From Entomortierella parvispora E1425 (taxonomy: Eukaryota > Fungi > Mortierellomycota), in NCBI GenBank assembly GCA_020891255.1, contig BQFW01000015.1, forward strand, positions 1-64,000: 64,000 nucleotides of DNA, read 5' to 3'. Positions 1 to 54,742 of the stretch are shown here, piece by piece (within the stretch, counting starts at the first letter, position 1; each line of letters starts with the position of its first letter). Under the pieces are notes generated by a model. That model did not search any database. It had not been told where the DNA came from and saw nothing but the letters and a program-made list of their open reading frames with translations. Made by a program: the position numbers and the translations under genes.

Positions 1-615
1 GCGGACAGGAGGGGCCCAGCACAGATTTTTTTTACAGGGCCCTAGCACAGACTATTTTACTGCCAATTGAAAACTGGTCAATATCCATTCTTGTCTCGTC
101 CCCACTTCGTTCGAGTGCGTCTCGCCTGTTTACTCGGCGTTTCTATAACACTACCAAAGAGATTATTCTTGCCAAAGCATCCGCAAAGGAGGCCACAGCA
201 CAAGCTGCAAGAATAAAAAAGCAAAAGTGTATAGGTATATGATATCCAGGATCTACATCGCAAACAACATCCCATTGCCGGGTTGCCCGGCCATTAGAGC
301 CTTCTATCGGAACCCCTCTTTGTTTCAATGATGGGGTGATCGCGACGGGTTACAACAAGGGCACTTAGTCATGACTTCATAGGCAAGATGGAAGGGATTT
401 ATTCTTTGGACATTCGTCCCATGGCAGAACAAAAGGCGTGAGGGTTGACTTGTATAGTCTACTGTATTGAATTGCCGCGTGAGCGAGGGGTCATTGAAGC
501 CTCCATCAACTGAGTAGAGTAGTGTGTTCTCGACCATCCTACCATCCTAAGCGAATAGACAATTTGCAGAGGCCAATCTTTTGATTTACCTGTATTCAAG
601 AGCTGCCCGACAGTG

Positions 616-781
616 GTGGATGGATAAGATTGATCATGGAGCAACTGATGGGGCGGTGGATGGACAAGGTAGATTATGGAGCAACTGATGGTGCGGTGGA
701 TGGACAAGGTAGATCATGGAGCAATTGATGGGCGGAAGATGGACAAGGTAGATCATGGGGCAACTGATGGGCTGGTGAATG
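616..781 (+). repeat. About four copies of a ~40-bp tandem repeat upstream of the TATA box (also ~39530-39690)
   Basis: Repeated gatggacaaggtagat(c/t)atggagcaactgatgg(g/t)gcgg units. Confidence 0.85.
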
Positions 782-862
782 GATTAAAGTTAATCAAGAT
801 CAACCAATGATAGTTCATCGCCAGCTCCCTCTGCTGCTGTCTCGTTCCAGCTTTGTTTGCGG

Positions 863-870
863 TATAAATA
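863..870 (+). promoter_or_regulatory. Candidate TATA box of the LINE transcription unit (copy B 39775-39782)
   Basis: TATAAATA followed by a pyrimidine-rich, ATG-free first exon and a run of introns. Confidence 0.6.
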
Positions 871-1034
871 CATCCAGGTCGCCTCGATCGCGCCCACGCC
901 CATTCTGCAGTTTCTGACTCAACTCTCTACCTTAAAACCTCCAGCACCATCATCTCTTCCCGAGCTTTCACCTGATTTTCCTTGATCTGAGTGCCAGTCT
1001 GACCCAAAGGCCGCTCTGAATCATATTTTGTCAG

Positions 1035-1642
1035 GTACGTGATGTGAGATATCTGTTCATCTACCAGCCTGCCTCAGAATTCTCTCTAACATCAATATTT
1101 TCTATCAGACCTGCTGTTGGTTTTCCCTGAGAAAAGTGCCATCTACCTCAAAGACCCTCTCGAAGACCAGATCCTCTCTTTGATCTCCAAGTACGTCTAC
1201 TAAGAGTATCCATCTGTTCTTCTATCTACATGTATCTACCAGCTTCGGAACTAATACTAAAAAACACTTCTTTATCTTCAAGTTCGACCTCGATTTTAGT
1301 GCTTGGTTCCTCCTTCGCAGAGTACCGGTCTGCCTCAAAGGCCTCCCTTCTGAAGACCAAGAAATCTACCTATTGATCGTCAGAGGTATGTAACTACAGG
1401 GTGCTTCTTCATCTATCTACTTGCTTCTGGACCCTCCCTAAACCAAACTTTTATCCACAGGTTCATGCCGAGCAATTGTTCTTGAGTAACTGTCCGCTTC
1501 AAAAAAACCTTCCCAAACCCCAAAAAACACGAGATTCCTTCCAACTGTCCAGTATTCCTTGTCGGGTATGCAGCACAAAATCAAAATATCAAAAAGGTCG
1601 AAAGTCCTGAATACTGACAGATGATCCTTTTCAACAATATAG
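1035..1642 (+). other. Spliced 5' leader with four predicted introns: 1035-1108, 1191-1282, 1386-1460, 1566-1642
   Basis: Donors GTACGT, GTACGT, GTATGT, GTATGC; branch-like CTAAC, CTAAT, CTAAAC, CTGAC; acceptors CAG, AAG, CAG, TAG; lengths 74-92 nt. The intron 2 acceptor is the least certain (alternatives at 1299 or 1320). Confidence 0.75.
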
Positions 1643-1657
1643 AGCAAGCCTCTCGCC

Positions 1658-4045
1658 ATGGCCCCACCTTTACCTTGGAACGAAAACGTGAATCGACTAG
1701 AGGCTGAGGAACTCGTCCAGAGATTTGGCAGACTCTGGCCTACACGCTGTGAGAATGCCGATTGCAATAAGCGTTTCCCACGGTCCTTCTACAAGGATCA
1801 AGTGTGCTCGCAGGGCTCAAACATCCGCCGCTTCCGTTGTGGCGGTTGTAAAATACCTTTAAAGTCCAAAAATGCTGGAGACTCTGCGTGTCGTTAGTCG
1901 TGATCCCGCAAAAGCTGAACGAGTAGTCCGTAGAAATGCGGAAGCGTATAGGAGGAGAGAGCGACGACAGGGGTCCTTATTAATGTTGTACACCCTACTA
2001 CCCACGCTGTATGCTCCGTTGACAATATGGAACTCCCTGCCCCTCAAGATGGGGCCTCTATGGACCATGCGGAACACCCTGCCACTCAAGATGGAGCCTC
2101 TGCGGACCATGCGGTACATCCTGCCACTGAAGATGGGGCCTCTGTGGACCATGCAGAACACCCTGCCACTCAAGATGGGGCCTCTGCGGATCATAATGGT
2201 ACCCCATGGCACTTGATCGGTCATAGCCTGCTGTCAGACACCGAATCAGTGCACGAGCTTGACGATTACGATTCTGGCACAATGGTGATTTCCTCGACCC
2301 CGCTGCAACCTGCTTTGGGTACCCAAATTTCTCGCCTTGGATCTCCCCTGACACAGCAGCACCGGCACTCCCAGTACCCGCACTGGTCGCCTGACTCTCT
2401 GCAGCCCTCTCAGTCAGTTGCCAACAGTCAGTCATCGTTAAGCTTCATCGTTGATGATCAGTCACAAATTGATCCACAAGCAAGCCAGATGGGCTCCTCA
2501 TCCCCACTTTGAGCCTCCACCCCTCACAGTGGACACCGATGTCAGGGGAACTCCGATACAGACTGTAGCCTTGGCATCTGGATCCACTCTGCCAGCCTTC
2601 CAAAGTTCTCCTCTCAGGGCGGGTCAAGAGCTCTCGCACACACACAGTTCCTCTCCCAGGCCATCATCTGTTGCATTGGGGAAACGTCGTCGCGCGGAGA
2701 CTCCTGAATCTACTGAGCCAGATTCGCAGAGTTTTCCGCCTGGGGCGGATCAAGAGCTCTCGCGTCAGCACATGTCCCCTCCCAGACTATCATCTGCTGC
2801 ATTGGGAATACGACGCCACGCGGAGGGCTGCATGGAGGAAACTACCTGTCAAAAGGAGCAGCCACAGCGTACTGAGGGTCAACCTTTATTCCGAGAGCAG
2901 GCTGTCGAGCTATTTACAGCCCAATTGGCGCAATTGGAAGCTCGACTCGAAGTCCAACTTGCAACCCAACTTCAAGCCGTCATCCAAGCAGAAGTGACAG
3001 AGCTCTTCCGTCTGCAACGCGAGTCCAACCAAGCACCACTGACAGCGGAGGCAGACTCCCGGCCACCTGTCATTCCCGCAACTCGAGTCCAGGCCGGTCT
3101 AGCAAAGCCTGTTCGAGTTCGTATCGACTCTGTTCGGCCGCGCCAAGCTCAGCCTGCCTCTCCTCGGTCCCATTCTGCAGCCAGATCACCGGCAGCAGTT
3201 TCTGCTGTTGCCTCGCAGTCAATTCGCCTGCCAAAGCAAGAACCAAGGCAACAGTTAACGCTGGTGCTGCTCGCCAAGGTCCTAGTAAGGCTCAGATGGA
3301 CATTGTCAAGTCCATGAAGCCTCCAAGACCTTTCAGAGCACGCAAAACTGCTGCCGAGGCCGCAAGACCAACGATTGCTCCTGTCCGAGTATATTTTTCT
3401 GGTGTTCAGTCCGGGCCTCTCAAGGTTTTCAAGGCAAAGTTGCGTGGTTTGAGAATTTGTACCTCACTGATTTACAACATCTCATTTGTTGGGAAGTCTA
3501 TGTGCGAATTTTTGGTCGATGCTGCCTACCGAGCCAAGTTCATTGAGTCTATGAAAAGCTTCACTTTCAGACACTTGCCCAACTATGACCCAGCCGTTCC
3601 TCAAGATCCCAATGTCACTGAAGAGACTGCAGAGCTTCTGAGAGGGGCGTACATTCGCCGCCTTGAAACAACGGCTTCAACGACCAACCGCGATTTCGTG
3701 CGAGATGATTTCCTGAGCATGCTTGCTGCAGCAGATCCCACAGCTCCCACATCTGCCACAGATCTCCCTGATCTCTCTGGACCGATGGACACTGGCACTG
3801 TTGCCGCGACGGCCTCTGCTTCTTCCGGGCTGGTGGAAACTGATATCCCTCTGACTGGTGCTGCTTCTGAAGCCGCCTCTGCTGCAATGGATATTGATCC
3901 CCCCCTGGCTGCTACTGCAACCGCCTCTGATTCTGAGCTAGTTGACACTCATACGCATCCCGCTGCCGAAGACACAGCTGGTGCCAGTGCTGACGCTCTA
4001 AGCGCTAATGAGGAACCCACACGCCCCGCTTCCTCTCATGAATAA
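1658..4045 (+). CDS. Non-LTR retrotransposon ORF1 (gag-like), copy A, broken by homopolymer frameshifts
   Basis: Pieces 1658-1897, 2027-2512, 2451-3317 and 3296-4045 join up to the intact 796-aa ORF of copy B. Confidence 0.85.
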
Positions 4046-7000
4046 TCAGGTCCTCCGTACTGGTTACTTGAACTGCCGCGGTCTTCAGGCAGGTTCATTT
4101 GACAGAATCGTTTCTTTCGTTTCTGGCCCATCCCCCTTCGATATCATCTTCTTATCAGAGACATGGTATATCTGCCCTGACTATTACAGTCGCCATCCTC
4201 TCTTCCTTTGTTCTACGCCCATACCTGGAAGTCGACCAGTTAATGGCCGGCTTTATGGTGGTATCATCTGTGTTGTCTCCCACCAACTCAAGCGATCACA
4301 CTGCACCTTTTCAGTCACTCGGCACTCAATTGACGTGTCCATCTTTGGCACCAACATCCGCGCCTTATATCTTCCTCCTTCTCTCAAGAACCCCAGCTTC
4401 CGTTCAGCTTTGTTCGATCCCGTCGCCCACCTTTCTTCGAGATCTCGTCCAGATATTCTTCTCGGAGACATCAACACCAAGCTAGGAGAACCAAACCTTC
4501 CCCTATCGGTGAACGTGTCACCATAGTTCAGGAGCTGGTCCATCATTACCATTACAACCGAGTTTTCCCTCTTCTGTCTACGCCAAGAACCATCATGTAT
4601 TGGCTCGCTTTCACCCAGACTTCTCTTGGAGGTATGAACGGGTTGACCCCTCAGTATGGACAGATACGGACCACAGTCTCATGTCTTGCAAGTTCACGCC
4701 TCGTGATATACATGATACTGGCACTACCGACGAGTGTTACCGTATCAGTCTGAAGTACTTGGAACTAAAAGCAGTTCGTTCTCTCTGCTGTGGTTACTAC
4801 ATGGAACTGGCCAACCAATTCGACAAGTTTATCATGGACACTGTATCGCGCGTACGGCGACTCTCTGACGCGCGTTCTTTGGATGGAGTTTCCTCCAAGA
4901 CAGACAAGCAGTGGTGGATCATCTTGACGATTGTCTTTCTTCAGCTATCTTGACAGCGGCTGAAGAAGCATGCGGCTCTTATGTCCCCAGCGTCATTCGT
5001 ACTACTCCAGACAAGCTCTCTGATTCTTTGTCTTCGGTCCCGAAGATGAATGACGCCATCCGTATCTTCAAACGAGCGTGTCGCAGCCAGGTGGTGGCTC
5101 TGAAATCTCGGGACCCTACCATCTCTCCAGTGGCAGATGTTGTCTCGCACTACAGGTCTGTTTTCACTCAGCCCGATCCACGATTCCTACCTGCGGCTCG
5201 ATCCCCTTACCGTGGCATCTCCTTTGAGCCTGATCCTGGCTTGGACGATATGTTTACGAAGGATAACATGCAAGCAATCTGGAAGAAATACCCGACCAAC
5301 GCCTCTGGTGGAGAGGATGGGATCCATGTCCAACTCCTACGAGCACTTCAAGGCACCGAGCTTCCAGAACACATTGCTGGCCTTTTCAGGATTTGCTGTT
5401 TGCTCGGTGTCACGCCATCATCATGGAATGTCTCCGTAATCAATCCTATTCCGAAGACAGAGGGTGCTACGACCATTGACAAATTCCGGCCAATTTCCCT
5501 TACATTGATGATTCGGCGGACCTTCGAAAAGTTCTTTTGGGACATCTTTTGGAGTCTGATGCCTCCAAGCTTCATCACACTCAAGCTGGCTTCCGTAACG
5601 GATTTTCAACTTTGACTCATGCATTGGTTGCTGACGACTGTGCTATCCGCGGACAAAAGTATCGTGTCTTTTACGATTTTGCCCAAGCATATGATACAGT
5701 CCCAGTGCCTCTGCTACTTTCAAAGATGAAAACCCGAGGAGCATCCGCTCAGATTTTGTCGCTCGTAGACGCCCTCTTTGTCGGCACATCTACTAAGGTT
5801 ATCGTCAATGGGAGGCAGACAGAGTCTATTCCCCTGAGCCGAGGCCTGCTCCAAGGCTCCATCTTGTCTCCTCTATTGTTTGACATCTTTATCGACGACC
5901 TGGCTCACAAGCTTAACAAGGATACTCCGGACCCGAAGAAAATACCGCGAGCGCTGTTGTACGCCGACGATATAACAGCTGGATCCCATGCACTGCACCA
6001 CTTGCAAGTTACTTCCAATGACTTGGTCGACTGGTGCCACGAGAACGGTATGACGATCAATCTCGCTAAATGCGGGGTGGTTGGTCTGACCCATGGTGAT
6101 CGTGACTTGGTCCTTCGCGGTATTGGCCCAATCCCTCGGGTTGAATGCTACAACTACCTTGGATTCCCATACAAATCCAGAGGGATCGACTGGGCTGAAC
6201 ACTTGAAATCCATGGCTTTAAAAGCATCAAAGACTCTGAAGTTCTGCGAAGCCAGGGGTAATTCCAAGTGGTCTGCAGGTCTACGGCTAGCTTTGTATCG
6301 CGCGTTTGTCCGCTCTAGAATGGAATATGGTGCAGGCATCATGTACCACTGGATCCAGAATGACAGCAAGTCTAGGACAGAGCACTTGAAGGCTATAGCG
6401 ACAGTCCAAGACGCGGCCCTGAAATGGATTTTGGAGTTCAAGGACCCTACAAAGGTTACTCACTCATTTCTTGCCTTGCCAACTATCTACGTGCGATTCT
6501 CCGACTTGGCCTGCCTCCTTACGGACCACTTTATTGGAATGGATGGGAACAACCCAGCAAGAACCCTCCGTGATGTCCTCTTCGGCAATGTTGGCCGAAA
6601 TAAGGACCGGATTCTTCCAAAGTGCCACAAGCACCCGGACCGCCTGTTGTATCAAAATTATCTGGCAAGACTTAGAAGAGAAGAAAAAGTCGATTCATTG
6701 AAGGTCTGGCTGCGGAAGAGGTTCCTTGACGAGTGCTTCCGGACGCTGCGGCTTTGCAAGTATTTCGAGCCTCAGATGCGCACGAGAGGTATAGGGCCTG
6801 TTACCGCCATCTACTTCAAGTCACTCCGCCTACGCAAGAACGCAATTGCTTGGCACCTGAACAAATTCGCTTGTGGAGCGCGCTGTTCGGAATGCAACAA
6901 CATTTTTCATCAAACCCATGTTGTCGATTGCGGCTGGCAAGAAAAGCTCCTTGATCGTGCCCCTCCGAAAGTTGTTGCCACCTTCTTGGCTCTGCCCCCG

Positions 7001-7129
7001 CTTGCACCAAACAAGTGTCGTCCCAACTTCGTCGACTTCCTCCTCAAGGAGAGGCACCTTGCCTCCTTGGCCGAGGCATTTGGCTGGTTGGAATTCTGGA
7101 TGCGTCCTCGGGAAAACTACGATGTATAG
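4038..7129 (+). CDS. Non-LTR retrotransposon ORF2: APE endonuclease, reverse transcriptase, C-terminal Cys/His motif (~1030 aa; copy A frameshifted)
   Basis: APE motifs GYLNCRGL, IIFLSETW, ILLGDIN, TDH. RT motifs FRPISL, QAGFR, DFAQAYDTV, GLLQGSILSPLLF, LLYADD, YLG. C-terminal CSECNNIFHQTHVVDC. Confidence 0.95.
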
Positions 7130-7698
7130 TCTTGGATGTTGTCTGTCAGTCAGTCAGTCTTTTTTTTTTTTTTTTTTTTTTTTTTTTGTTCGTGCTCCCT
7201 CGCGCCAGAAAAAAATAAAATAAAAAAATTGACTACAATTGCTGCCACCCTGCTCAGATCGTTGCTGCCCCATGTCTTCTCTCCTAGTAAGTGTTGATCA
7301 TTACGAAAGAAGATATCTCATTCTAACGACCTCCATGGTCTTTATTGTCCATATTGTCCAGCAATTAGTCCATCCAGTTGATGACATCTGCTCCTTTTTG
7401 CCCGTGTCCTCACACTTCTCGTATTCGCTCCCTTGGTAAGCATCTGCTCTTCACGCCTACAATACCCCTTTCAATGGAAGAGAGATAGAAAGAAAGAGCA
7501 ATCGTTCTAACCATTTCAACTGCTTTGTCCATAGAGTTAAGAATGTCAATGGTATATATCTCCTCGGTCCTTTGAATCCTTGCTGTCAATTCAAGCGGCT
7601 GTCTCCTTTTCGCCTACTCTGCTCCCTGCTTCCGTGGCGGCGCCTTGCGGCCTTGACATGATCTGAACTGACAGGGGGTTCTGGGGGTCGAGACTGGG

Positions 7699-7729
<31 letters not shown>

Positions 7730-10700
7730 GCTCCAAAAAAAAAACATTCAGCTCTCCAAGCTGCAGATGGCGGCTGTTCCTGCCCGGTTGTTATATCTGC
7801 TCTAGTTTCAGTAAGTGCAGCCTACAATTCATACATTCGATGTTCCCTACTGAGGAAGATAAACGGAGAAAGTATTTCAACTGACGGCTTTAGTTGATTT
7901 TATATCCTACGTAGTCTGACCCAGCGTCTGGTCTTCGGTCCTCCATTCAGGTGAGATGTTTCCATTCTTCCGCCTCTTCCTTGCAGACCGTTGCCACATT
8001 GTCATTGTGATTGCTCCTACCATGTCAAAGGCGCCCTTTTCTGGTCTTCTCTCCGGACTTCCATCCTGGCCAATTGGTCTTTTTCAGCCCACTCATACCT
8101 GCTTACTCCTCTTGTAGCGGCAACTTGCGGTCTTGACTCAACTTTACGGTTTCCTGGGAGTAGACGTCGTAATTTCATCATGGCATGGACCACAGGAGCT
8201 TTGTTACATGGTTTGGACACATCCTTTCTGTCTTGCTTCCATGTCTATTCCCTGCGGTGAGTGAAGTTGGCTTGTATGGAAGAGAGATAAAGAAAACTTA
8301 TTCTAACGCCCCTCTTGTTTCATCGTCCATGTAGTCGGGCATGTTGACAGCGTCTGCTCGCCTCGGCTCTAGCCAGTTCCATGTTCCTTGCGATCATTGC
8401 CCTAAGTTTTTGACTGACCGGAACTCTGGATCGGGCGCTGGTTCTTTGATGGCGAGGTCCGTCTCCGCTCAAAAAAGAAAGGAGGGGCAGCCGTCACAGT
8501 TCTGTTGTCCCATGTCTGGTCCGGTCCATGTCTTCCGCTGAATCGTTGAATACCAACTTTATGCTGGCCAGAAATCCCTCCTGCCCCTGTCGGGTCGGGG
8601 CACCAAGGGGATGAAACCACATTCACGATTCGCATGCGTGAGTCCTGGATCTGGGTTAAGGTCTGCCCTCGTTGTCGTCTATGGCTGCTTCCTGGAGTCC
8701 TTCAGTCGAAATGCCTATCGTTGCCTGTCGACTCCATGCTGGCTCTTTCAATCAAGCTGTTGCATGTGTCATTACATGTCATCTCCAAGCCGCTCTTTCG
8801 ATGAGGTTGATCTGCCCACCTTTGAAGAACCTCTCCTACTACCTCCGAGGACTGGGTGTTCAAAGGCTGAACCCAAAGCCCGCCCATATGGGTCTTGAGT
8901 TTTTGGCATGAAAGACTGGCATTGTTCCTGCTGCTCCGCGGTCTCGACTCAAGTTTCTGGTTTTCTGAAGCGCTGGGAGCTACATCTTGGGTCTGTTTCG
9001 TGAACCATATTCGCAAAAAAGAAACAAACTGGCTGTATCCTGCCGTTCCTACCGTTCCTGCAGTCCTGGAAGTTGCATCCGTTCGTATGGTAAGTTTTTT
9101 GGGGCGTGTCGTTGAAAAGAGACAAAGACGGATGGGCAGCTCCAACGAGGACGAGAATCGAGTACGAGATGGTTGACGCACGTGATGTGCCTTTTTTTCG
9201 TTTTTTTTTTTTTTTTTTTTGTCCGCAGCCAAGCATGTTCAGGAAGACAGGGTATCCTCAGCCTCAGACCTCACAGCACTGGTCTAGTCGACAGGAGTTC
9301 GGAGGAGGGGTCCTTGATTGTGTGGTTCGTTGCCCGCTTAGAAAAAAAGAGTTCCTGGCCTGCTTTGTTGCAAATCCCACTTGTTCAATCCGCTTCTATG
9401 GTAAGTGTTGTTCCTCACGCGTTTGAAAGCCTCTCGTGCAAAAAGACAAATGGAGGGACAATCGTTCTAACCCTTCCCATGTTGTCGATATAATCAGGCA
9501 GGCTACTTATCTTTGTTCACACCGCCGTTTTATTCGCTCCTTTGGTAAGTGTCTGCCACGCCTGTGATACTGTGATATCCCTTTCGAGGGATAGAAAAAA
9601 AAAAGCAATCGTTCTAACGACTTTAGCTGATTTTATTGTCGATATAGTCAAGAGCGTCAACGGTATCCATTCTCCTCGATCCTTGAGCTCCTTGCCGTCA
9701 ATCCAAGTGGGCTGATTCTTTTCGCCTACTACGATTCCTGCTTTAGAGACGGCGCCTAGTGGCTTTTGCATGAGTCCTAGACAAACTCGCACACTTGACT
9801 AGGTGTGGTCTGATTCCACGCAAAATAGCAAGAGGAGAGGGCCGTTGCTGGGTCGTCGTCGATAAGTTCGTTCCAGTATTCCTTGGGGTCGAGCCGTTGA
9901 ATATTGCCTCCGTGATGATTTCTCAGTCAAGTTTATCACCCTCATCGATACCAAGGCGATGAAGGGTGAATCCATCACCAATCGGTACTCAAGAATCCTG
10001 GATCTCCGTTGAGAATTGCTACCGTTGTCGCCTGTGGCCGCTTCCTGGAGTCTTTCGGTCGAACTGATGCCTGTCGTTACCTGTCAACCACATGTTGGCC
10101 CACTCAGTCACATTGTTGCCTGTCGCTGCCTGTCAACTCCATGCTGGTCTGCTTAGTCAAGTTGTTGCCAGGCGTTGCTTGTCGACTCCTGCCTGGTCTA
10201 TTCAGTCAAGTTGCTGCATGTGACATACATGTCATCATCATGCTGTCCATCCAGCCAAGCTGGATTGCCCTCCTTTGACCCTCCGCTCCTGCTCCTTCCG
10301 AGGACCGGATGTCAGAAGGATGAGCCCATAACCTGCACCTGTGGGTCTTGAGGTTTTGCATGAAAACCTGCGTTGTCCTGCTTCTGCACGGTCTCGATTC
10401 AAGTTTCTGGTTTTCTAAAACGCCGGAGCCATGCCTCGAGTCTAGTACTTTTTGTTGCATGGGTCCACATTCGCACAGAAGACATAGACTGGTTGCACCC
10501 TGCTGTCCTTGCTGTCCTGGATGTTGCATCCGTTCGTACGGTAAGTTTGAGAAGAGTATCTTTTGAAGAACGGGGAAAGAGTGATTTCTCAGAGCCGCAA
10601 AGGCAAAATGAAAGAAAATTGCGACAAGCCACGGACAGCGGAAAGGGAAAAAAAAAGAAATGCATTCTAACGTGGTCTCTTCTTGCTGTTGCCAACCTAG

Positions 10701-10943
10701 CCAAGCATGTTCAGGCCAGCATGTCTCTTTTGGCTTGCGGACAAGGGTTTCCGTTTCCTTCTCCAGTGACCTTGACCTAGGTTCTGACTCGACTGAAGTT
10801 TCGAATCAGGTCGAGGTCGGGGGGTTTTTTCTGGTTGTGTGGTCCGTCTGACGCTTTGCAAAATGAAACGACTTTCTGCACTGCCCGCTCCTCTGGTAAG
10901 CAAGGCGACTCTTCACGCGTCTGAAATCCCTCCCAAGGAAAGA

Positions 10944-10989
<46 letters not shown>

Positions 10990-11064
10990 GAGGAAGAGAA
11001 AAAAAGAAACGCTCATTCTGACGTTCTCTTCGTTTTATTGTCTACGCAGTTAGGAAGTCAACAG

Positions 11065-11280
11065 CGTCCTCTTCCTGGTCCTGGTCCTCTTCCTGGTCCT
11101 GGCCCTCTTCCTGGTCCTGGTCCTCTTCCTGTCCTCTTCCTGGTCCTGGCCTCTTCCTGGTCCTGGCCTCTTCCTGGTCCTGGCCTCTTCCTGGTCCTGG
11201 CCTCTTCCTGGTCCTGGCCTCTTCCTGGTCCTGGCCTCTTCCTGGTCCTGGCCCTCTTCCTGGTCCTGGTCCTCCTCTTG
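11065..11280. repeat. 17/18-bp minisatellite (cctggtcctggc(c)ctctt)n
   Basis: Direct reading of the tandem units; also at ~50020-50215. Confidence 0.9.
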
Positions 11281-24818: not shown

Positions 24819-24848
<30 letters not shown>

Positions 24849-42978: not shown

Positions 42979-45900
42979 TCAGGTCCTCCGTACTGGTTAC
43001 TTGAACTGCCGCGGTCTTCAGGCAGGTTCATTTGACAGAATCGTTTCTTTCGTTTCTGGCCCATCCCCCCCTTCGATATCATCTTCTTATCAGAGACATG
43101 GTATATCTGCCCTGACTATTACAGTCGCCATCCTCTCTTCCTTTGTTCTACGCCCATACCTGGAAGTCGACCAGTTAATGGCCGGCTTTATGGTGGTATC
43201 ATCTGTGTTGTCTCCCACCAACTCAAGCGATCACACTGCACCTTTTCAGTCACTCGGCACTCAATTGACGTGTCCATCTTTGGCACCAACATCCGCGCCT
43301 TATATCTTCCTCCTTCTCTCAAGAACCCCAGCTTCCGTTCAGCTTTGTTCGATCCCGTCGCCCACCTTTCTTCGAGATCTCGTCCAGATATTCTTCTCGG
43401 AGACATCAACACCAAGCTAGGAGAACCAAACCTTCCCCCCCCTATCGGTGAACGTGTCACCATAGTTCAGGAGCTGGTCCATCATTACCATTACAACCGA
43501 GTTTTCCCCTCTTCTGTCTACGCCAAGAACCATCATGTATTGGCTCGCTTTCACCCAGACTTCTCTTGGAGGTATGAACGGGTTGACCCCTCAGTATGGA
43601 CAGATACGGACCACAGTCTCATGTCTTGCAAGTTCACGCCTCGTGATATACATGATACTGGCACTACCGACGAGTGTTACCGTATCAGTCTGAAGTACTT
43701 GGAACTAAAAGCAGTTCGTTCTCTCTGCTGTGGTTACTACATGGAACTGGCCAACCAATTCGACAAGTTTATCATGGACACTGTATCGCGCGTACGGCGA
43801 CTCTCTGACGCGCGTTCTTTGGATGGAGTTTCCCTCCAAGACAGACAAGCAGTGGTGGATCATCTTGACGATTGTCTTTCTTCAGCTATCTTGACAGCGG
43901 CTGAAGAAGCATGCGGCTCTTATGTCCCCAGCGTCATTCGTACTACTCCAGACAAGCTCTCTGATTCTTTGTCTTCGGTCCCGAAGATGAATGACGCCAT
44001 CCGTATCTTCAAACGAGCGTGTCGCAGCCAGGTGGTGGCTCTGAAATCTCGGGACCCTACCATCTCTCCAGTGGCAGATGTTGTCTCGCACTACAGGTCT
44101 GTTTTCACTCAGCCCGATCCACGATTCCTACCTGCGGCTCGATCCCCTTACCGTGGCATCTCCTTTGAGCCTGATCCTGGCTTGGACGATATGTTTACGA
44201 AGGATAACATGCAAGCAATCTGGAAGAAATACCCGACCAACGCCTCTGGTGGAGAGGATGGGATCCATGTCCAACTCCTACGAGCACTTCAAGGCACCGA
44301 GCTTCCAGAACACATTGCTGGCCTTTTTCAGGATTTGCTGTTTGCTCGGTGTCACGCCATCATCATGGAATGTCTCCGTAATCAATCCTATTCCGAAGAC
44401 AGAGGGTGCTACGACCATTGACAAATTCCGGCCAATTTCCCTTACATTGATGATTCGGCGGACCTTCGAAAAGTTCTTTTTGGGACATCTTTTGGAGTCT
44501 GATGCCTCCAAGCTTCATCACACTCAAGCTGGCTTCCGTAACGGATTTTCAACTTTGACTCATGCATTGGTTGCTGACGACTGTGCTATCCGCGGACAAA
44601 AGTATCGTGTCTTTTACGATTTTGCCCAAGCATATGATACAGTCCCAGTGCCTCTGCTACTTTCAAAGATGAAAACCCGAGGAGCATCCGCTCAGATTTT
44701 GTCGCTCGTAGACGCCCTCTTTGTCGGCACATCTACTAAGGTTATCGTCAATGGGAGGCAGACAGAGTCTATTCCCCTGAGCCGAGGCCTGCTCCAAGGC
44801 TCCATCTTGTCTCCTCTATTGTTTGACATCTTTATCGACGACCTGGCTCACAAGCTTAACAAGGATACTCCGGACCCGAAGAAAATACCGCGAGCGCTGT
44901 TGTACGCCGACGATATAACAGCTGGATCCCATGCACTGCACCACTTGCAAGTTACTTCCAATGACTTGGTCGACTGGTGCCACGAGAACGGTATGACGAT
45001 CAATCTCGCTAAATGCGGGGTGGTTGGTCTGACCCATGGTGATCGTGACTTGGTCCTTCGCGGTATTGGCCCAATCCCTCGGGTTGAATGCTACAACTAC
45101 CTTGGATTCCCATACAAATCCAGAGGGATCGACTGGGCTGAACACTTGAAATCCATGGCTTTAAAAGCATCAAAGACTCTGAAGTTCTGCGAAGCCAGGG
45201 GTAATTCCAAGTGGTCTGCAGGTCTACGGCTAGCTTTGTATCGCGCGTTTGTCCGCTCTAGAATGGAATATGGTGCAGGCATCATGTACCACTGGATCCA
45301 GAATGACAGCAAGTCTAGGACAGAGCACTTGAAGGCTATAGCGACAGTCCAAGACGCGGCCCTGAAATGGATTTTTGGAGTTCAAGGACCCTACAAAGGT
45401 TACTCACTCATTTCTTGCCTTGCCAACTATCTACGTGCGATTCTCCGACTTGGCCTGCCTCCTTACGGACCACTTTATTGGAATGGATGGGAACAACCCA
45501 GCAAGAACCCTCCGTGATGTCCTCTTCGGCAATGTTGGCCGAAATAAGGACCGGATTCTTCCAAAGTGCCACAAGCACCCGGACCGCCTGTTGTATCAAA
45601 ATTATCTGGCAAGACTTAGAAGAGAAGAAAAAGTCGATTCATTGAAGGTCTGGCTGCGGAAGAGGTTCCTTGACGAGTGCTTCCGGACGCTGCGGCTTTG
45701 CAAGTATTTCGAGCCTCAGATGCGCACGAGAGGTATAGGGCCTGTTACCGCCATCTACTTCAAGTCACTCCGCCTACGCAAGAACGCAATTGCTTGGCAC
45801 CTGAACAAATTCGCTTGTGGAGCGCGCTGTTCGGAATGCAACAACATTTTTCATCAAACCCATGTTGTCGATTGCGGCTGGCAAGAAAAGCTCCTTGATC

Positions 45901-46073
45901 GTGCCCCTCCGAAAGTTGTTGCCACCTTCTTGGCTCTGCCCCCGCTTGCACCAAACAAGTGTCGTCCCAACTTCGTCGACTTCCTCCTCAAGGAGAGGCA
46001 CCTTGCCTCCTTGGCCGAGGCATTTGGCTGGTTGGAATTCTGGATGCGTCCTCGGGAAAACTACGATGTATAG
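42971..46073 (+). CDS. Non-LTR retrotransposon ORF2 (APE-RT), copy B, homopolymer frameshifts at sites different from copy A
   Basis: Same motifs as 4038-7129. Confidence 0.95.
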
Positions 46074-49000
46074 TCTTGGATGTTGTCTGTCAGTCAGTCA
46101 GTCTTTTTTTTTTTTTTTTTTTTTTTTTTTGTTCGTGCTCCCTCGCGCCAGAAAAAAAAATAAAATAAAAAAAAAATTGACTACAATTGCTGCCACCCTG
46201 CTCAGATCGTTGCTGCCCCATGTCTTCTCTCCTAGTAAGTGTTGATCATTACGAAAGAAGATATCTCATTCTAACGACCTCCATGGTCTTTATTGTCCAT
46301 ATTGTCCAGCAATTAGTCCATCCAGTTGATGACATCTGCTCCTTTTTGCCCGTGTCCTCACACTTCTCGTATTCGCTCCCTTGGTAAGCATCTGCTCTTC
46401 ACGCCTACAATACCCCTTTCAATGGAAGAGAGATAGAAAGAAAGAGCAATCGTTCTAACCATTTCAACTGCTTTGTCCATAGAGTTAAGAATGTCAATGG
46501 TATATATCTCCTCGGTCCTTTGAATCCTTGCTGTCAATTCAAGCGGCTGTCTCCTTTTCGCCTACTCTGCTCCCTGCTTCCGTGGCGGCGCCTTGCGGCC
46601 TTGACATGATCTGAACTGACAGGGGTTCTGGGGGTCGAGACTGGGCCTCTTTTTTTTTTTTTTTTTTTTTTTTTGCTCCAAAAAAAAAACATTCAGCTTC
46701 CAAGCTGCAGATGGCGGCTGTTCCTGCCCGGTTGTTATATCTGCTCTAGTTTCAGTAAGTGCAGCCTACAATTCATACATTCGATGTTCCCTACTGAGGA
46801 AGATAAACGGAGAAAGTATTTCAACTGACGGCTTTAGTTGATTTTATATCCTACGTAGTCTGACCCAGCGTCTGGTCTTCGGTCCTCCATTCAGGTGAGA
46901 TGTTTCCATTCTTCCGCCTCTTCCTTGCAGACCGTTGCCACATTGTCATTGTGATTGCTCCTACCATGTCAAAGGCGCCCTTTTCTGGTCTTCTCTCCGG
47001 ACTTCCATCCTGGCCAATTGGTCTTTTTCAGCCCACTCATACCTGCTTACTCCTCTTGTAGCGGCAACTTGCGGTCTTGACTCAACTTTACGGTTTCCTG
47101 GGAGTAGACGTCGTAATTTCATCATGGCATGGACCACAGGAGCTTTGTTACATGGTTTGGACACATCCTTTCTGTCTTGCTTCCATGTCTATTCCCTGCG
47201 GTGAGTGAAGTTGGCTTGTATGGAAGAGAGATAAAGAAAACTTATTCTAACGCCCCCTCTTGTTTCATCGTCCATGTAGTCGGGCATGTTGACAGCGTCT
47301 GCTCGCCTCGGCTCTAGCCAGTTCCATGTTCCTTGCGATCATTGCCCTAAGTTTTTGACTGACCGGAACTCTGGATCGGGCGCTGGTTCTTTTTGATGGC
47401 GAGGTCCGTCTCCGCTCAAAAAAGAAAGGAGGGGCAGCCGTCACAGTTCTGTTGTCCCATGTCTGGTCCGGTCCATGTCTTCCGCTGAATCGTTGAATAC
47501 CAACTTTATGCTGGCCAGAAATCCCTCCTGCCCCTGTCGGGTCGGGGCACCAAGGATAGAAACCACATTCACGATTCGCATGCGTGAGTCCTGGATCTGG
47601 GTTAAGGTCTGCCCTCGTTGTCGTCTATGGCTGCTTCCTGGAGTCCTTCAGTCGAAATGCCTATCGTTGCCTGTCGACTCCATGCTGGCTCTTTCAATCA
47701 AGCTGTTGCATGTGTCATTACATGTCATCTCCAAGCCGCTCTTTCGATGAGGTTGATCTGCCCACCTTTGAAGAACCTCTCCTACTACCTCCGAGGACTG
47801 GGTGTTCAAAGGCTGAACCCAAAAGCCCGCCCATATGGGTCTTGAGTTTTTGGCATGAAAGACTGGCATTGTTCCTGCTGCTCCGCGGTCTCGACTCAAG
47901 TTTCTGGTTTTCTGAAGCGCTGGGAGCTACATCTTGGGTCTGTTTCGTGAACCATATTCGCAAAAAAGAAACAAACTGGCTGTATCCTGCCGTTCCTACC
48001 GTTCCTGCAGTCCTGGAAGTTGCATCCGTTCGTATGGTAAGTTTTTTGGGGCGTGTCGTTGAAAAGAGACAAAGACGGATGGGCAGCTCCAACGAGGACG
48101 AGAATCGAGTACGAGATGGTTGACGCACGTGATGTGCCTTTTTTTCGTTTTTTTTTTTTTTTTTTTTGTCCGCAGCCAAGCATGTTCAGGAAGACAGGGT
48201 ATCCTCAGCCTCAGACCTCACAGCACTGGTCTAGTCGACAGGAGTTCGGAGGAGGGGTCCTTGATTGTGTGGTTCGTTGCCCGCTTAGAAAAAAAGAGTT
48301 CCTGGCCTGCTTTGTTGCAAATCCCACTTGTTCAATCCGCTTCTATGGTAAGTGTTGTTCCTCACGCGTTTGAAAGCCTCTCGTGCAAAAAGACAAATGG
48401 AGGGACAATCGTTCTAACCCTTCCCATGTTGTCGATATAATCAGGCAGGCTACTTATCTTTGTTCACACCGCCGTTTTATTCGCTCCTTTGGTAAGTGTC
48501 TGCCACGCCTGTGATACTGTGATATCCCTTTCGAGGGATAGAAAAAAAAAAGCAATCGTTCTAACGACTTTAGCTGATTTTATTGTCGATATAGTCAAGA
48601 GCGTCAACGGTATCCATTCTCCTCGATCCTTGAGCTCCTTGCCGTCAATCCAAGTGGGCTGATTCTTTTTCGCCTACTACGATTCCTGCTTTAGAGACGG
48701 CGCCTAGTGGCTTTTGCATGAGTCCTAGACAAACTCGCACACTTGACTAGGTGTGGTCTGATTCCACGCAAAATAGCAAGAGGAGAGGGCCGTTGCTGGG
48801 TCGTCGTCGATAAGTTCGTTCCAGTATTCCTTGGGGTCGAGCCGTTGAATATTGCCTCCGTGATGATTTCTCAGTCAAGTTTATCACCCTCATCGATACC
48901 AAGGCGATGAAGGGTGAATCCATCACCCAATCGGTACTCAAGAATCCTGGATCTCCGTTGAGAATTGCTACCGTTGTCGCCTGTGGCCGCTTCCTGGAGT

Positions 49001-49894
49001 CTTTCGGTCGAACTGATGCCTGTCGTTACCTGTCAACCACATGTTGGCCCACTCAGTCACATTGTTGCCTGTCGCTGCCTGTCAACTCCATGCTGGTCTG
49101 CTTAGTCAAGTTGTTGCCAGGCGTTGCTTGTCGACTCCTGCCTGGTCTATTCAGTCAAGTTGCTGCATGTGACATTACATGTCATCATCATGCTGTCCAT
49201 CCAGCCAAGCTGGATTGCCCTCCTTTGACCCTCCGCTCCTGCTCCTTCCGAGGACCGGATGTCAGAAGGATGAGCCCATAACCTGCACCTGTGGGTCTTG
49301 AGGTTTTGCATGAAAACCTGCGTTGTCCTGCTTCTGCACGGTCTCGATTCAAGTTTCTGGTTTTCTAAAACGCCGGAGCCATGCCTCGAGTCTAGTACTT
49401 TTTGTTGCATGGGTCCACATTCGCACAGAAGACATAGACTGGTTGCACCCTGCTGTCCTTGCTGTCCTGGATGTTGCATCCGTTCGTACGGTAAGTTTGA
49501 GAAGAGTATCTTTTGAAGAACGGGGAAAGAGTGATTTCTCAGAGCCGCAAAGGCAAAATGAAAGAAAAATTGCGACAAGCCACGGACAGCGGAAAGGGAA
49601 AAAAAAGAAATGCATTCTAACGTGGTCTCTTCTTGCTGTTGCCAACCTAGCCAAGCATGTTCAGGCCAGCATGTCTCTTTTGGCTTGCGGACAAGGGTTT
49701 CCGTTTCCTTCTCCAGTGACCTTGACCTAGGTTCTGACTCGACTGAAGTTTCGAATCAGGTCGAGGTCGGGGGGTTTTTTTCTGGTTGTGTGGTCCGTCT
49801 GACGCTTTGCAAAATGAAACGACTTTCTGCACTGCCCGCTCCTCTGGTAAGCAAGGCGACTCTTCACGCGTCTGAAATCCCTCCCAAGGAAAGA

Positions 49895-49942
<48 letters not shown>

Positions 49943-52900
49943 GAGGAAGAGAAAAAAGAAACGCTCATTCTGACGTTCTCTTCGTTTTATTGTCTACGCA
50001 GTTAGGAAGTCAACAGCGTCCTCTTCCTGGTCCTGGTCCTCTTCCTGGTCCTGGCCCTCTTCCTGGTCCTGGTCCTCTTCCTGTCCTCTTCCTGGTCCTG
50101 GCCTCTTCCTGGTCCTGGCCTCTTCCTGGTCCTGGCCTCTTCCTGGTCCTGGCCTCTTCCTGGTCCTGGCCTCTTCCTGGTCCTGGCCCTCTTCCTGGTC
50201 CTGGTCCTCCTCTTGGCTCATTATTCTGGCCAAACCCTCTATGGCCGGATCTAGCAATCGAAGGACTTTTCTGTCCGCTTCTGCCATGCCGTTCTGTCAG
50301 GCTGTGTCTGCCTCCGACCTGCTGCGGCCCTGATTTTTTTTTTTGGTTGCGGAGCCAAAAAAAAAAAAAGCTTCACCCCAGGCGTGTCGTTCTGTCCGCT
50401 CCTGCAGTAGGTGTTGCTCCTCAAGCGCTTGATGTTCCTTCTTGGAAAAAGAATCCATGCTGATGTCCTCTTGGTTTTTGTCCATATAGACCTAGCGCCT
50501 GCCCGCGCTTGCTTCAGTGGTATTTTGGTTGGGCCCCTTGCTTCCTTTGGTCCTTCAGTCGAGCAGATCTCCTCTGGTGGGTCTCCCCAGATTGTCCATT
50601 GTGGGCCTTGGGTCTTTGGGTCTGTCTGGTCCAGTTGTCGCTAGGGGCGCTCTCTGTGCTCCATCATTCAAGCCCATCGCCTGTCACCAATCTCCTTAGC
50701 CAGAGGGCACTTGCCCATCTCCCCACATGTGGGGGATGGAGGCTGAGACTATGTGAGCTGGGACTAGGGCACCAGGACCGACTCTGTTGGCTTTTGCCCT
50801 GTGGCTACTTCCTGGAGTCTTTCGGTCGAACCGTTGCCTGTCTTGCCTGTCGACTCCATGCCTGGCCCATTCAGTCAAGTTGCTGCCTGTCGACTCCATG
50901 CCTGGCCCATTCAGTCAAGTTGCTGCCTGTCGTTGCCTGTCGACTCCATGCCTGGCCAATTCAGTCAAGTTGCTGCCTGTCGTTGCCTGTCAACTCCATG
51001 CTTGGCCCACTCAGTCAAGTTGCTGCCTGTCGTTGCCTGTCAACTCCATGCTTGGCCCACTCAGTCAAGTTGCTGCCTGTCGTTGCCTGTCGTTGCCTGC
51101 CGACTCAATGCCTGTTGCATGTGACATTACATGCCATCATGAAGTTTCTGATTTCTGAAACGCCGGAGCCATACCTCGAGTCTAGTACTTTTTTGTTGCA
51201 TGGGTCCACATTCGCACAGAAGACATAGACTGGTTGCACCCTGCTGTCCTTGCTGTCCTGGATGTTGCATCCGTTCGTACGGTAAGTTTGAGAAGAGTAT
51301 CTTTTGAAGAACGGGGAAAGAGTGATTTCTCAGAGCCGCAAAGGCAAAAAGAAAGAAAAGTGCTGCGAAAAGTCACGGACAGCGGAAAGGGAAAAAAAAA
51401 CGAAATGCATTCTAACGTGGTCTCTTCTTGCTGTTGCCAACCTAGCCAGTGACCTTGACCTTGGTTCTGAGTCGACTGAAGTTTCGGATCAGGTCGAGGT
51501 CGGGGGTTTTCTTCTTGGTCCTGGCCCTCTTCCTGGTCCTGGCCCTCTTCCTGGTCCTGGCCCTCTTCCTGGTCCTGGCCCTCTTCCTGGTCCTGGCCCT
51601 CTTCCTGGTCCTGGCCCTCTTCCTGGTCCTGGCCCTCTTCCTGGTCCTGGCCCTCTTCCTAGTCCTGGCCCTCTTCCTGGTCCTGGCCCTCTTCCTAGTC
51701 CTGGCCCTCTTCTTGGTCCTGGCCCTCTTCCTGGTCCTGGCCCTCTTCCTGGTCCTGGCCCTCTTCCTGGTCCTGGCCCTCTTCTTGGTCCTGGCCCTCT
51801 TCCTAGTCCTGGCCCTCTTCTTGGTCCTGGCTCTTCCTAGCCCTGGTCCTCCTCTTGGCTCATTATTCTTGGCCAAACCCTCCTGACTGGATCTGACAAT
51901 GGACGGACTTTTCGCTTCCCTGCATAGTTGCTATTCACTTCTGTCCTGCGGGCTTGATCTTTTTTTTTTTTTTGGCGGAAACAAAAAAAAAGCTTCACTC
52001 CAGCGTGTTGTTCTGTCCACTTCTGCAGTAGGTGTTGCTTCTCAAGCGCTTGGTGTTGCTCTCTTCTTGGAAAAAGAATCCATGCTGATGTCCTTTTTGT
52101 TTTCTTGTTCACATAGACCACAGCCAGCCGGGCTTCTCGCTTCAGTGGTCTTTTGGTTGGGCCTTCTCTCCCTTTGGAGACTGAGCTAGGAGGTCGATCT
52201 TGGTCTTTGCCTCTATTTGCTCTAGTTGTCACTGGTTGGCGCTCCATTCAATTATGACCATCATGTCACTGCATGTCGATTCCCTGTGGCCAAGTTGTTG
52301 ATCTCGGCGCGGATCTTCCCCCCTGGCCGGCTCCCCACCCACTCCCCCCCGAGGGACTGGGGGCCAGGGGGGTTTCTCCCACTTGCCCATCCCTTTTGTG
52401 TGAGGGATGGGAGTTGGGATTGGGGGCTGATTCTGCAGCAGCAGCATCTATTGCTATTGCCCCAGATGTCACCGATGGACGCTTCCTGCGCGCCATCCAC
52501 TCAAGCCCGTCGCATGTCGCTGCATGCTGATTCCCTTCAGCCAAGTTGTTGATCTCGGCGCGGATCCTCCCCCTCTGGCCGGCTCCTGCCCACTCCCCCC
52601 CGAGGGACTGGGGGCCAGGGGGTTTTCTCCCCACTTGCCCATCCCTTTTGTGTGAGGGATGGGAGTTGGGACTGGGAGCTGATTCTGCTGCAGCAGCCTC
52701 TATTGCTGTTGCCCCAGATATCACCGATGGACGCTTCCTGCGCGCCATCCACTCAAGCCCGTCGCATGTCGCTGCATGCTGATTCCCTTCGGTCAAGTTG
52801 TTGATCTCGACGTGGATCTTCCCCCCTGGCCGGACTCGCCACCCCACTCCCTTCTGAGGGAATGGAGTCCAGGAGGGGGTTCTCTTCTCTTCTCTCCCCA

Positions 52901-53834
52901 CTTGCTCATCTTCCTCACCTGTGAGAAATAGAGATTTGGGGCTGACTCTGCTGCTGCTGCCCTCTGCCGCGGCTGCCCCAGATGCCACCGATGGACGCTC
53001 CCTGCGGTCCATCCTTCAAGCCCATTGCAGACTGACTGCTCCAAGTTGGTCTGTTTTGCCCCCCCTCTGGCCGGCTTCCTCCCACTTCCCCCCGGGGACT
53101 GGGGGGCCAGAGGAGGTTTTAGCAGCCCTATCCATAGCCCACTCGTGAGCCGTGGCAATGGGGCTCGGGAGGCCACTCGCCATCAGCTATCCCATTAGCT
53201 TGCACTTGCAGCTTCTTCTTGCGCCTTTCTGCTCACCGTTGCCGTTCAAGACTCTGCCAGCTTGCGCATCCCAGCTCGCCCATGCGAGCGCGCAAGCAAG
53301 GACTCCCCTATTCCCCCGCTCACCCCTACTTGGGGTGACATGGGCGGGGCTTTCCTCCCATGCAGGCAGACAAGACAAGACAAGGACACCCTACTTTCCC
53401 CACCTTGCACCCTAACTTGGGTGCCCTGGGCATGGCTCACCCCAATCTGGGGTGTCCCCAGCGTAGGGTCTCCCCATTGCAGGGTTTCCCCATTGTAGGG
53501 TTTCTTCACCCTAAAGTCCGTCCACCCAGTCTCCCCCCAGAGACCCCAACTTTCCCCCTGACCCCCACTCAGGGGGGTCATTTGGGTGTGACCAAGAGAC
53601 CAAGAGTTGGAGAATGCCCTCATGCATCTTGTCAGGGTCGTGGATGCATGCGATTGGTCCGATCGGGTTCCATCGATCACGCCATCGTCAGGGTGGATTG
53701 AGATGGAGTAAGATGGAGCAAGATGGAAAAGATGAAAGAGATGCCCAACCCAATTTGGACCTCTTTCTCTTCTCTCCATTCTCTCCATTCCTCCATTCCA
53801 CCCACCCACCCCCACCAACAACAGCACTCCCACC

Positions 53835-54672
53835 ATGAACCGCCACGCTGCCCCCCAGCACTCCCCAGTGAGCTTCAAGACAGTTGTCCAAACCCCCAAG
53901 AAGGTCACCATCGACGACTTTGTTGGCGAGAATGGCCTGGTTCCCTTAACACAGGCCCACAGCCACCTTAAGGGCTCCATGATGAGTCCTAGACCCATGA
54001 ACCTCCGCCCCCGCCAGAGGCGGGCCTCCCCCACCCACACCGTCTTCGGCGGGTCCGATGACGAGGGGCAGGGGAGCGAGGACTCCAAGGAGGACAACCA
54101 CCAAGATGACGACGCCGAGATAACGGACCCTCCCTCGGGACAGGGAGGACGAGACGGGGCAAGGCCATCACGTTGCTGACACCACGTACGTGGCTGATGC
54201 GGACGATGAGGCTACCCAACCATTGCCGGCGCTCGAGCAAGAACAAGACCTGTTGGAGATGGTGCCACAGAGCCCGCTGGAGACAATGGGGGGTGGACTC
54301 CCCCCCCTGTCACAGGCAGCGACTGGCACTGTCGACCAGGCGCCCGTGGTTGACGTTCACCAACCACAAGACGCCCCAACCCCTATGCATCCGAGGCAAT
54401 ATACCCAGGCCCTGGAGACCTTCGTTCAGACTCTCCAAAGGCGCTTCGAGTATGTCGAAGCGCGCCTCAGGATACACGAGCAAGCCCAAGTAGGCGAACA
54501 TTCGGCGATGCAAGGCTTGGATGACCTGGAGGACCAGTTCATGGATTTGAGTGATCAGATCTCTCATCACCTCTTCCGCCTCAGGCCACAGGCCCATCCC
54601 AAGCCCAAGCGTGCCCACTCCCGCCCCAAACCATACCACTCCCGCCCCGCCTCCAGGCGTGGCCCCAGATAG
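53835..54672 (+). CDS. Orphan protein of ~278 aa, copy B
   Basis: ORFs 53835-54179 and 54190-54672 join on removing one G. Confidence 0.6.
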
Positions 54673-54723
54673 CCCCGTAAACCATCAAGCATTGAGCCGA
54701 CTGGCATACCCCATTAAAGAATT

Positions 54724-54742
54724 AAAACCTAAAAACCCTAAA
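54724..54742. repeat. Short interstitial telomere-like remnant (about 2 units)
   Basis: aaaacctaaaaaccctaaa at the position matching the 15822-15914 tract. Confidence 0.8.

Follow-up and report, generated by a model that had tools for sequence, protein, structure and literature searches.

A giant subtelomeric unit of Entomortierella parvispora with the 3' terminus of a telomere-targeting LINE lineage

How does a block of DNA that encodes a reverse transcriptase (RT) come to be repeated, almost without change, next to telomere-type repeats at chromosome ends? The question is raised by Entomortierella parvispora E1425, an early-diverging soil fungus in which bases 1-64000 of contig BQFW01000015.1 (contig 15 of assembly GCA_020891255.1; this stretch of 64,000 nucleotides is called the window below) contain two such copies, A and B. 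A first-pass annotation of the window had described an RT-encoding block of at least 15 kb repeated at 38.9-kb spacing, each copy ending on a telomere tract, and had likened it to the Y' elements of yeast and the Terminons of rotifers. Comparison with other chromosome ends and with metagenomic relatives leads us to interpret the block as a giant derivative of a telomere-targeting long interspersed nuclear element (LINE) of the type with an apurinic/apyrimidinic endonuclease (APE), because the terminus of compact relatives recurs in it 8.65 kb past the stop codon of its second open reading frame (ORF2).

Copies of the unit and their junction with telomere repeats

In a self-comparison of the window, positions 1-15841 aligned over 15.9 kb with 38909-54742 (99.0% identity, 8 mismatches, 60 gap openings; offset 38908), which confirms the length of the repeated block and the spacing of its copies. 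Listed base by base, nearly all differences between copies A and B were 1-nt changes in homopolymer length or changes in the copy number of tandem repeats (mini-satellites), and fewer than ten were clean substitutions. The assembly was built from GridION reads with SMARTdenovo, Nanopolish and Pilon and consists of 19 contigs (PMC8759367). Copy A is cut off on its 5' side because the window begins at base 1 of the contig. Short-read polishing is defeated by multi-copy DNA, and we ascribe the homopolymer noise in the copies to this failure. As the first-pass annotation had described, the components of the block are co-oriented and point toward the C-strand repeats, the LINE ORFs, the intron-like motifs and the terminal ORF all being located on the + strand. 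The two copies and the sequences next to them comprise the following features:

1-15821, + strand: copy A of the unit, recognised by its identity to copy B, 5' side cut by the contig start; LINE, four modules and terminal ORF
About 1658-7129, + strand: LINE of copy A (ORF1/ORF2), with LINE protein matches at 1658-7120
15822-15915, + strand: interstitial C-strand telomere tract, 9.4 units of CCCTAAAAAA
15916-16477, + strand: flank of copy A (f_A), 94.5% identical to f_B and 82-85% to the other five flanks
37968-39474, + strand: 5' region of copy B, also present in the contig-10 left-end copy up to the limit of that contig
38515-39474: X segment of this 5' region, 95-96% identical to 23463-24414 and 58035-58983, both further inside the subtelomere
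39475-40587, + strand: LINE upstream region with 40-bp tandem repeats (39527-39695), a TATA-like box near 39775, intron-like sequences (for example 39947-40020) and a variable A-run (40503-40526)
40588-42978, + strand: LINE ORF1, 796 amino acids (aa), intact in copy B
42971-46073, + strand: LINE ORF2 with APE-type endonuclease (about 42971-43630), RT (about 44390-45112) and C-terminal CCHC motif (about 45816-45878)
46104-52300, + strand: four tandem paralogous modules with a period of about 1.4-1.8 kb, 75-96% alike, with mini-satellites and intron-like sequences
53835-54700, + strand: terminal ORF region, containing a 237-aa ORF that is split in every copy except A, where it is intact (14935-15648)
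54701-54742, + strand: 3' terminus of the unit with ATTAAA signal, TTAAAACC and a vestigial tract (about 1 unit), matching the 3' signature of the metagenomic relatives L010 and L017
54743-55337, + strand: flank of copy B (f_B), the member of the flank family beside this copy

In total, the unit is at least 16.8 kb long and occurs in at least seven copies in E. parvispora E1425. The five copies outside the window were found by a search with the 796-aa ORF1 protein and through clusters of LINE protein and terminal-ORF fragments, at these contig ends:

Contig 10, left end (L001)
Contig 10, right end (L006); a Gypsy-type element is inserted in its terminal ORF region
Contig 11, right end (L004)
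Contig 3, left end (L005/L009)
Contig 1, left end (L007)

Six of the seven copies are situated at contig ends and the seventh, copy B, 38.9 kb inside contig 15; this restriction to chromosome ends was established through annotated proteins only, and the same kind of search found the proteins of this LINE nowhere else in E. parvispora. The first-pass annotation had proposed to map all copies and to ask whether they lie near chromosome ends and stop at one and the same base before the repeats, and this is what the five additional copies do. In all seven copies, the 5' end faces the contig end and thus the chromosome tip, and about one sixth of the assembled chromosome ends is occupied by the unit. 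The terminal contigs stop within the unit, 8.9-16.8 kb from the tract, without terminal telomere repeats, so that none of the six unit-bearing contig ends reaches telomerase-type repeats, and their outermost few hundred bases are visibly noisy. Contig stops inside the unit fit an extension into a common repeat that was limited by read length. Within the assembled 8.9-16.8 kb, none of the seven copies is truncated at the 5' side. The copy at the right end of contig 10 carries a Gypsy/chromovirus-type long terminal repeat retrotransposon (RT, RNase H and integrase; L006:10362-15426) in its terminal ORF region. Of the 31-mers of window positions 13000-17000, 0-2% were present in sequencing runs of other strains under the same species label, and the unit or its junctions appear to be strain-specific or fast-evolving.

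The unit stops at the same terminal base in all seven copies, with GAATTAAAACC immediately followed by TAAAAA(A)CCC. The repeat is CCCTAAAAAA, a 10-nt sequence of the T6AG3 type, and it is the C strand that reads on after the 3' end of the unit, for about one repeat unit in four of the copies and for five to nine in the other three. In copy A, the tract starts with an irregular first unit, CCTAAAAAA, which is part of the 3' end of the element. In copy B, the irregular first unit that belongs to the element, CCTAAAAA, is the only one, and the CCCTAAACC of the flank follows at once. The claim that each copy ends on a telomere tract is therefore correct for copy A with its 9.4 units, but overstated for copy B.

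A family of flank sequences of about 580 bp, which begins with CCCTAAACCTTAATTTTAGGGTTTATTCGCCCTAAAC, adjoins the tract at all seven copies. The flanks of copies A and B are 94.5% identical over the first 560 bp and the other flanks are 82-92% alike, beside blocks that are about 99.9% alike and virtually free of substitutions across all copies. Past the tract, 15901-17769 and 54724-56675 are 90.6% identical (86 mismatches), in agreement with the earlier description of near identity that stops at the telomere-type tract and of more diverged flanks. The homology of the other five loci to the window ends about 580 bp beyond the tract. Since the blocks are nearly identical, the flanks diverged and the homology is lost after about 580 bp, the flank is the old subtelomeric sequence of each chromosome end, and the unit is located distal to it. 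The alternatives that the flank is the 5' untranslated region (UTR) of an older unit or an RNA gene were rejected on comparison, and it had no Rfam match. The flank core gave no match in a metagenome scan, and cluster look-ups revealed no paralogues of the small flank genes. A purine-rich satellite, (AGAGAGAGACG)n, of about 0.5 kb (17091-17601 and 55888-56460) is found about 1.2 kb proximal to both tracts and belongs to the older duplicated subtelomere. A segment of about 5.7 kb that lies between copies A and B is bracketed by inverted repeats, each about 400 bp long (28497-28890 and 33763-34199, 89.5% identical). The single CCCTAAAAA (37697-37705) was not accepted as a 5' junction, as it lacks the lineage motif described below and is probably a chance occurrence, with about 0.5 such 9-mers expected in the window by our own estimate.

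The LINE and its metagenomic relatives

By its predicted products, ORF1 and an ORF2 consisting of endonuclease, RT and CCHC motif, the RT belongs to an APE-type LINE and not to a Penelope-like element or to a LINE with a restriction-like endonuclease (REL). The RT matches RVT_1 of Pfam (E 1e-30), and its nearest solved structures are human L1 ORF2p, followed by R2. The N-terminus of ORF2 gave weak hits to Exo_endo_phos (PF03372) in four sequences and aligns with the APE motifs YLNxxGL, FLSETW, YLPPS, GDIN/GDFN and TDH. The CCHC motif has the form C-x2-C-x7-H-x3-C, and the REL endonuclease motifs (RHD/N, E, R/KPD, D/E) are absent from the 65 aa between this motif and the end of the protein. The C-terminal domain of ORF1 is kept in the metagenomic relatives L010, L011 and L017.

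ORF2 is split by frameshifts in every copy, at differing places, and no break is common to all copies. Copy B has three frame breaks, each at a homopolymer of copy-variable length, and each ORF2 break is read through in frame by at least one other copy. Because the breaks are unshared and coincide with homopolymers that vary between copies, the underlying ORF1 and ORF2 are probably intact. Because homopolymer errors occur systematically, the LINE frames stayed broken in a majority consensus built from all seven copies. The deposited gene models EMPS_10680 (window 1658-7129), EMPS_07226 (L001:2588-7896) and EMPS_08388 (L004:1340-6813) join ORF1 and ORF2, and their introns are invented and skip the homopolymer frameshifts. 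The A-run at 40503-40526, just 5' of ORF1, has 24 nt in copy B, about 6 nt in copy A and on contig 11, and intermediate lengths on contig 10, which may represent real length polymorphism or Nanopore error. An interpretation of the LINE as a simple insertion into the X/g segment with an empty site was rejected, as the sequences after X and after the LINE could not be matched and no target-site duplication was found.

Compact relatives of this LINE were found on metagenomic contigs. ORF2 of L017 (JGI) is 52-79% identical to ORF2 of the window in high-scoring segment pairs that cover nearly the whole length, L010 (ENA) is about 49% identical, and ORF2 of L011 (ENA) is 36% identical over 447 aa (E 3e-76), accompanied by a match of the ORF1 domain (E 8e-15). 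The compact relatives end 100-300 nt past the last stop codon with the same terminal motif and C-strand telomere repeats, and they form head-to-tail arrays with about two telomere-repeat units between the members. In L010, AATTAAATAAGACCTTAAAGCC-TAAAAAA-CCCTAAAAAA follows about 150 nt after the ORF2 stop and is succeeded by the 5' region of the next unit; the sequence at the start of the contig recurs, slightly changed, at its end, indicating that the units are arranged head to tail. In L017, the upstream unit is visible only as the end of an ORF1 and about 100 nt (L017:3-860), followed by the signature and about 2.5 T6AG3 units, after which a full-length LINE begins (L017:988-6148). Either an internal deletion or a non-autonomous, ORF1-only partner of the HeT-A kind may account for the upstream unit. 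L011, which is probably a fungal contig, contains three co-oriented LINEs head to tail (L011:1-12816), each ending with AATAAA...TTRAACCCTAACCC and a CCCTAA-type repeat; the last LINE adjoins unique DNA, and the 5' UTRs consist of 173-bp tandem repeats with telomere-like motifs. Telomere repeats at 5' junctions, as well as arrays, were seen in L010, L011 and L017, while the 5' junctions of E. parvispora are outside the assembly.

The E. parvispora unit ends with ATTAAAGAATTAAAACC-TAAAAAA-CCCTAAAAAA, and the irregular first unit TTAAA(A/G)CC-TAAAAAA-CCCTAAAAAA, with CC in place of CCC, is common to the unit, L010 and L017. This comparison identifies the last 20-40 or so bases of the unit as the canonical 3' terminus of this LINE lineage. 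A metagenome scan with the 3' signature returned five short contigs, all of which were unrelated. In the unrelated metagenomic contigs L012, L013, L015 and L016, TTAAAACCTAAAAAACCCTAAAA is followed about 40 nt on by CCTAGGTTTTTCCAGCCCTG; these contigs represent some other repeat family with T6AG3-like units.

The terminus of the unit is located at the tract, 8.65 kb downstream of the ORF2 stop, and is the sole lineage-type 3' end in the unit. No such end is present directly after the ORF2 stop, where T27 is followed by 21 nt and an A-rich run. Structures composed of a T-run, a short GC-rich spacer and an A-run occur at 46104-46178 (T27 and an A-rich stretch of 27 nt), directly after the ORF2 stop, and at 46650-46695 (T25 and A10), about 500 bp further on in the first module, and their run lengths vary between copies. 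In the region from 46 to 51.5 kb, eight strict intron-like motifs were detected on the + strand and none on the - strand. There are about 11 good intron candidates with TTCTAAC branch sites on the + strand, and about 15 intron-like sequences, recognised by their motifs, are kept in every copy. By our own coordinate mapping, one predicted intron falls within a multi-exon gene model at the equivalent position of L007. The modules were also considered as decayed LINE coding sequence or as repeats of the LINE leader, and both ideas were rejected, as neither LINE protein remnants nor similarity to the leader were found. No Rfam family reached its gathering score in 38300-57000, and no ribozyme was detected at E<=1 in 53600-54800. 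The 237-aa terminal ORF has no homologues and no Pfam hit, and we do not regard this predicted reading frame as an established gene. Near the 3' end of the unit, a palindrome at 53690-53808 could form a long hairpin and gave weak matches to microRNA precursors on both strands, far under the gathering scores.

Origin and spread of the unit

The junction of the unit with the repeats would have been formed by target-primed reverse transcription, in which the T-rich G strand of a short telomere would prime on the A-rich 3' end of the element RNA. In this species, the 3' UTR of the element would have grown from 100-300 nt to 8.65 kb, comprising the four intron-like modules and the orphan ORF region. 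The present copies would have spread between ends chiefly by copying of DNA: after invasion of the internal tract of another end by a short telomere, everything distal to this tract would be copied by break-induced replication or gene conversion, as for Y'. We tentatively and slightly favour such DNA-level spread of the giant unit over a route via RNA, because intron-like sequences are retained in every copy, because there is no 5'-truncated copy among the seven, because the copies include at least 1.8 kb of ordinary subtelomeric repeat upstream of the TATA box, and because copy B sits in a patchwork of subtelomeric sequence, the distal part of which holds the sister flank (94.5%) and copy A. 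Several observations weigh against DNA-level spread. The 5' end of the unit, which is the key discriminator between RNA and DNA, is located beyond the assembly as the terminal copies stop at contig ends, and the introns are recognised by sequence motifs alone. The lack of truncation is weak evidence, because full-length copies are also common in the arrays of L010 and L011. In four of the seven junctions, the tract has about one repeat unit, which offers little homology for strand invasion but enough for priming of a reverse transcriptase. The element may be active, with ORF1 and ORF2 seeming intact once homopolymer errors are discounted. Finally, the search for copies made use of annotated proteins, so that dispersed or fragmentary copies may have escaped.

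Retrotransposition of the whole unit is a serious possibility as well. A single RNA covering the whole unit (17 kb or more) and terminating at the ATTAAA signal shortly before the tract would be copied unspliced by the element's own ORF1 and ORF2 proteins onto telomeric G strands of several chromosome ends in a recent burst. Such a course is suggested by the single lineage-type 3' end at the end of the block, with none after ORF2, by the demonstrable tie of the lineage to telomere repeats and the behaviour of the relatives as retrotransposing arrays, by the probably intact ORFs and by the location of all features on one strand. Copies with about 99.9% identity beside flanks with 82-94%, and a break exactly at the tract in all copies, are also consistent with it, and so are tracts of 1-9 units, minimal at four junctions and like those of other fungal telomeric LINEs (PMC12857005). 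It is more difficult to reconcile with the retained intron-like sequences, with a template length that is unusual for a LINE, with the absence of truncation from all seven copies and with shared sequence that reaches at least 1.8 kb 5' of the apparent promoter and is a generic subtelomeric repeat. The first-pass proposal of a giant RT-mobilised unit joined to chromosome ends is genuinely strengthened by the signature of the LINE lineage at the 3' terminus. The last spread may have occurred as RNA or as DNA. That the unit is an active, LINE-based counterpart of the Terminons, with an intron-retaining RNA of at least 17 kb being reverse-transcribed onto T6AG3 ends, forming the outermost DNA of at least six ends and acting as back-up or alternative to telomerase, seems unlikely to us.

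The other proposal of the first-pass annotation was a tract-to-tract unit of about 38.8 kb, consisting of flank, satellite, LINE, modules and tract and amplified in tandem by unequal recombination or via circles. Two copies with a distance of 38.9 kb on contig 15, the right flanks of copies A and B, which are mutually closest (94.5%), and a second shared segment of about 2.1 kb (22675-24764 and 57249-59333, 98.2% identical) would be in line with this proposal. However, the other five ends lose their homology to the window about 580 bp past the tract, where flanks that are 82-92% alike stand beside blocks with about 99.9% identity. The flank of copies A and B has diverged by 5-10%, compared to about 0.05% for the block, and nothing corresponding to 24764-37600 follows 59333 in the window. 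The region upstream of copy A is outside the assembly, so a third period is not visible. We therefore consider the 38.8-kb unit very improbable and do not uphold it. Even less credit is given to an assembly artefact, by which copy A would be a false duplicate of copy B or the first 38.5 kb would be mis-joined via the X repeat of about 1 kb. A multi-copy repeat in a Nanopore/SMARTdenovo assembly, beyond the reach of short-read polishing (PMC8759367), and noisy contig ends are circumstances in which such errors could arise. Yet copies A and B differ in the length of their tracts (9.4 and about 1 unit) and in their flanks (94.5% identity), indicating two distinct junctions, and each of the five additional copies is tied to a unique flank of its own. 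A mis-join would alter only the linkage of A and B, but not the distribution over multiple ends.

Relation to known telomeric elements and meaning for the lineage

TRAS and SART of Bombyx mori are APE-type LINEs specific for telomere repeats, and telomerase-type repeats coexist with them in the genome. The E. parvispora unit resembles them in being based on a LINE with ORF1 and an ORF2 bearing APE endonuclease and RT, in having its 3' end on telomere repeats with fixed orientation and register, and in the confinement of its copies to chromosome ends; the likeness is one of features. The unit differs by its host, an early-diverging fungus with a 10-nt T6AG3 repeat, by the 8.65 kb of non-LINE modules between ORF2 and the 3' end, and by having only 1-9 repeats on its proximal side, not being seen inside long repeat arrays. 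MoTeR of Magnaporthe, FoTeR of Fusarium and Cnl1 of Cryptococcus are likewise fungal elements that occur only at chromosome ends with few C-strand repeats after the 3' end (PMC12857005, PMC7367193). Tandem repeats in the 5' region and head-to-tail arrays, the latter observed here in the relatives L010, L011 and L017, are additional common features. However, these elements belong to the CRE/SLACS clade and have a single ORF with a C-terminal REL endonuclease (CCHC...RHD/N...E...R/KPD...D/E; PMC12857005, PMC7367193), whereas ORF2 of the unit has an N-terminal APE and ends 65 aa past the CCHC motif without REL motifs.

With the Terminons, which are Athena elements of bdelloid rotifers (PMC6431247), the unit has in common that a giant RT-encoding unit with co-oriented components is located at chromosome ends, that short reverse-complement telomere repeats (here 1-9 units) are found at the 3' end and that intron-like sequences (here identified by motif) are retained. 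It is nevertheless not a Terminon, as its RT is of the LINE type with an APE endonuclease and not Penelope-like, and no hammerhead ribozyme was found before the repeats. Furthermore, it has no supported accessory ORF, and 5' truncation by telomere repeats was not seen. Similar to Y' of yeast, the unit is a homogenised block of several kb distal to an internal telomere tract and a more diverged core subtelomere, it is present at a subset of ends in fixed orientation and sometimes more than once per end, and spread by recombination is plausible. Classification as Y' did not hold either, since the unit encodes a LINE RT and not a helicase, which Pfam did not detect in the scanned block ORFs of at least 230 aa, and its 3' junction is the terminal signature of a retrotransposon. 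HeT-A, TART and TAHRE of Drosophila replace telomerase and attach by poly(A). They resemble the unit as LINEs with 3' ends toward the centromere and very long 3' UTRs, and an ORF1-only partner element like HeT-A appears to be present in the relative L017. The E. parvispora element differs in that it ends in telomere repeats.

Insects, rotifers, a few protists and algae, and three genera of ascomycetes or basidiomycetes are known to harbour retrotransposons that target telomeres. To our knowledge, all such elements of fungi use a REL endonuclease. In a literature search, we found no paper on telomere-associated retroelements or on the T6AG3 repeat in Mortierellaceae, and the lineage of telomere-targeting LINEs described here is previously undescribed. 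It adds an APE-type telomeric LINE lineage in early-diverging fungi, namely in Mortierellaceae and metagenomic relatives, with a 3' end adapted to an unusual 10-nt telomere repeat, the C strand of which is 60% A and resembles a poly(A) tail. One member of the lineage has expanded to a 17-kb subtelomeric unit. E. parvispora can be cultured, and Nanopore, Illumina and RNA data already exist for it, which makes it a tractable system for the questions of how LINE 3' ends and telomere sequences co-evolve, whether giant retro-units move as RNA or as DNA, and how retroelements and recombination build subtelomeres.

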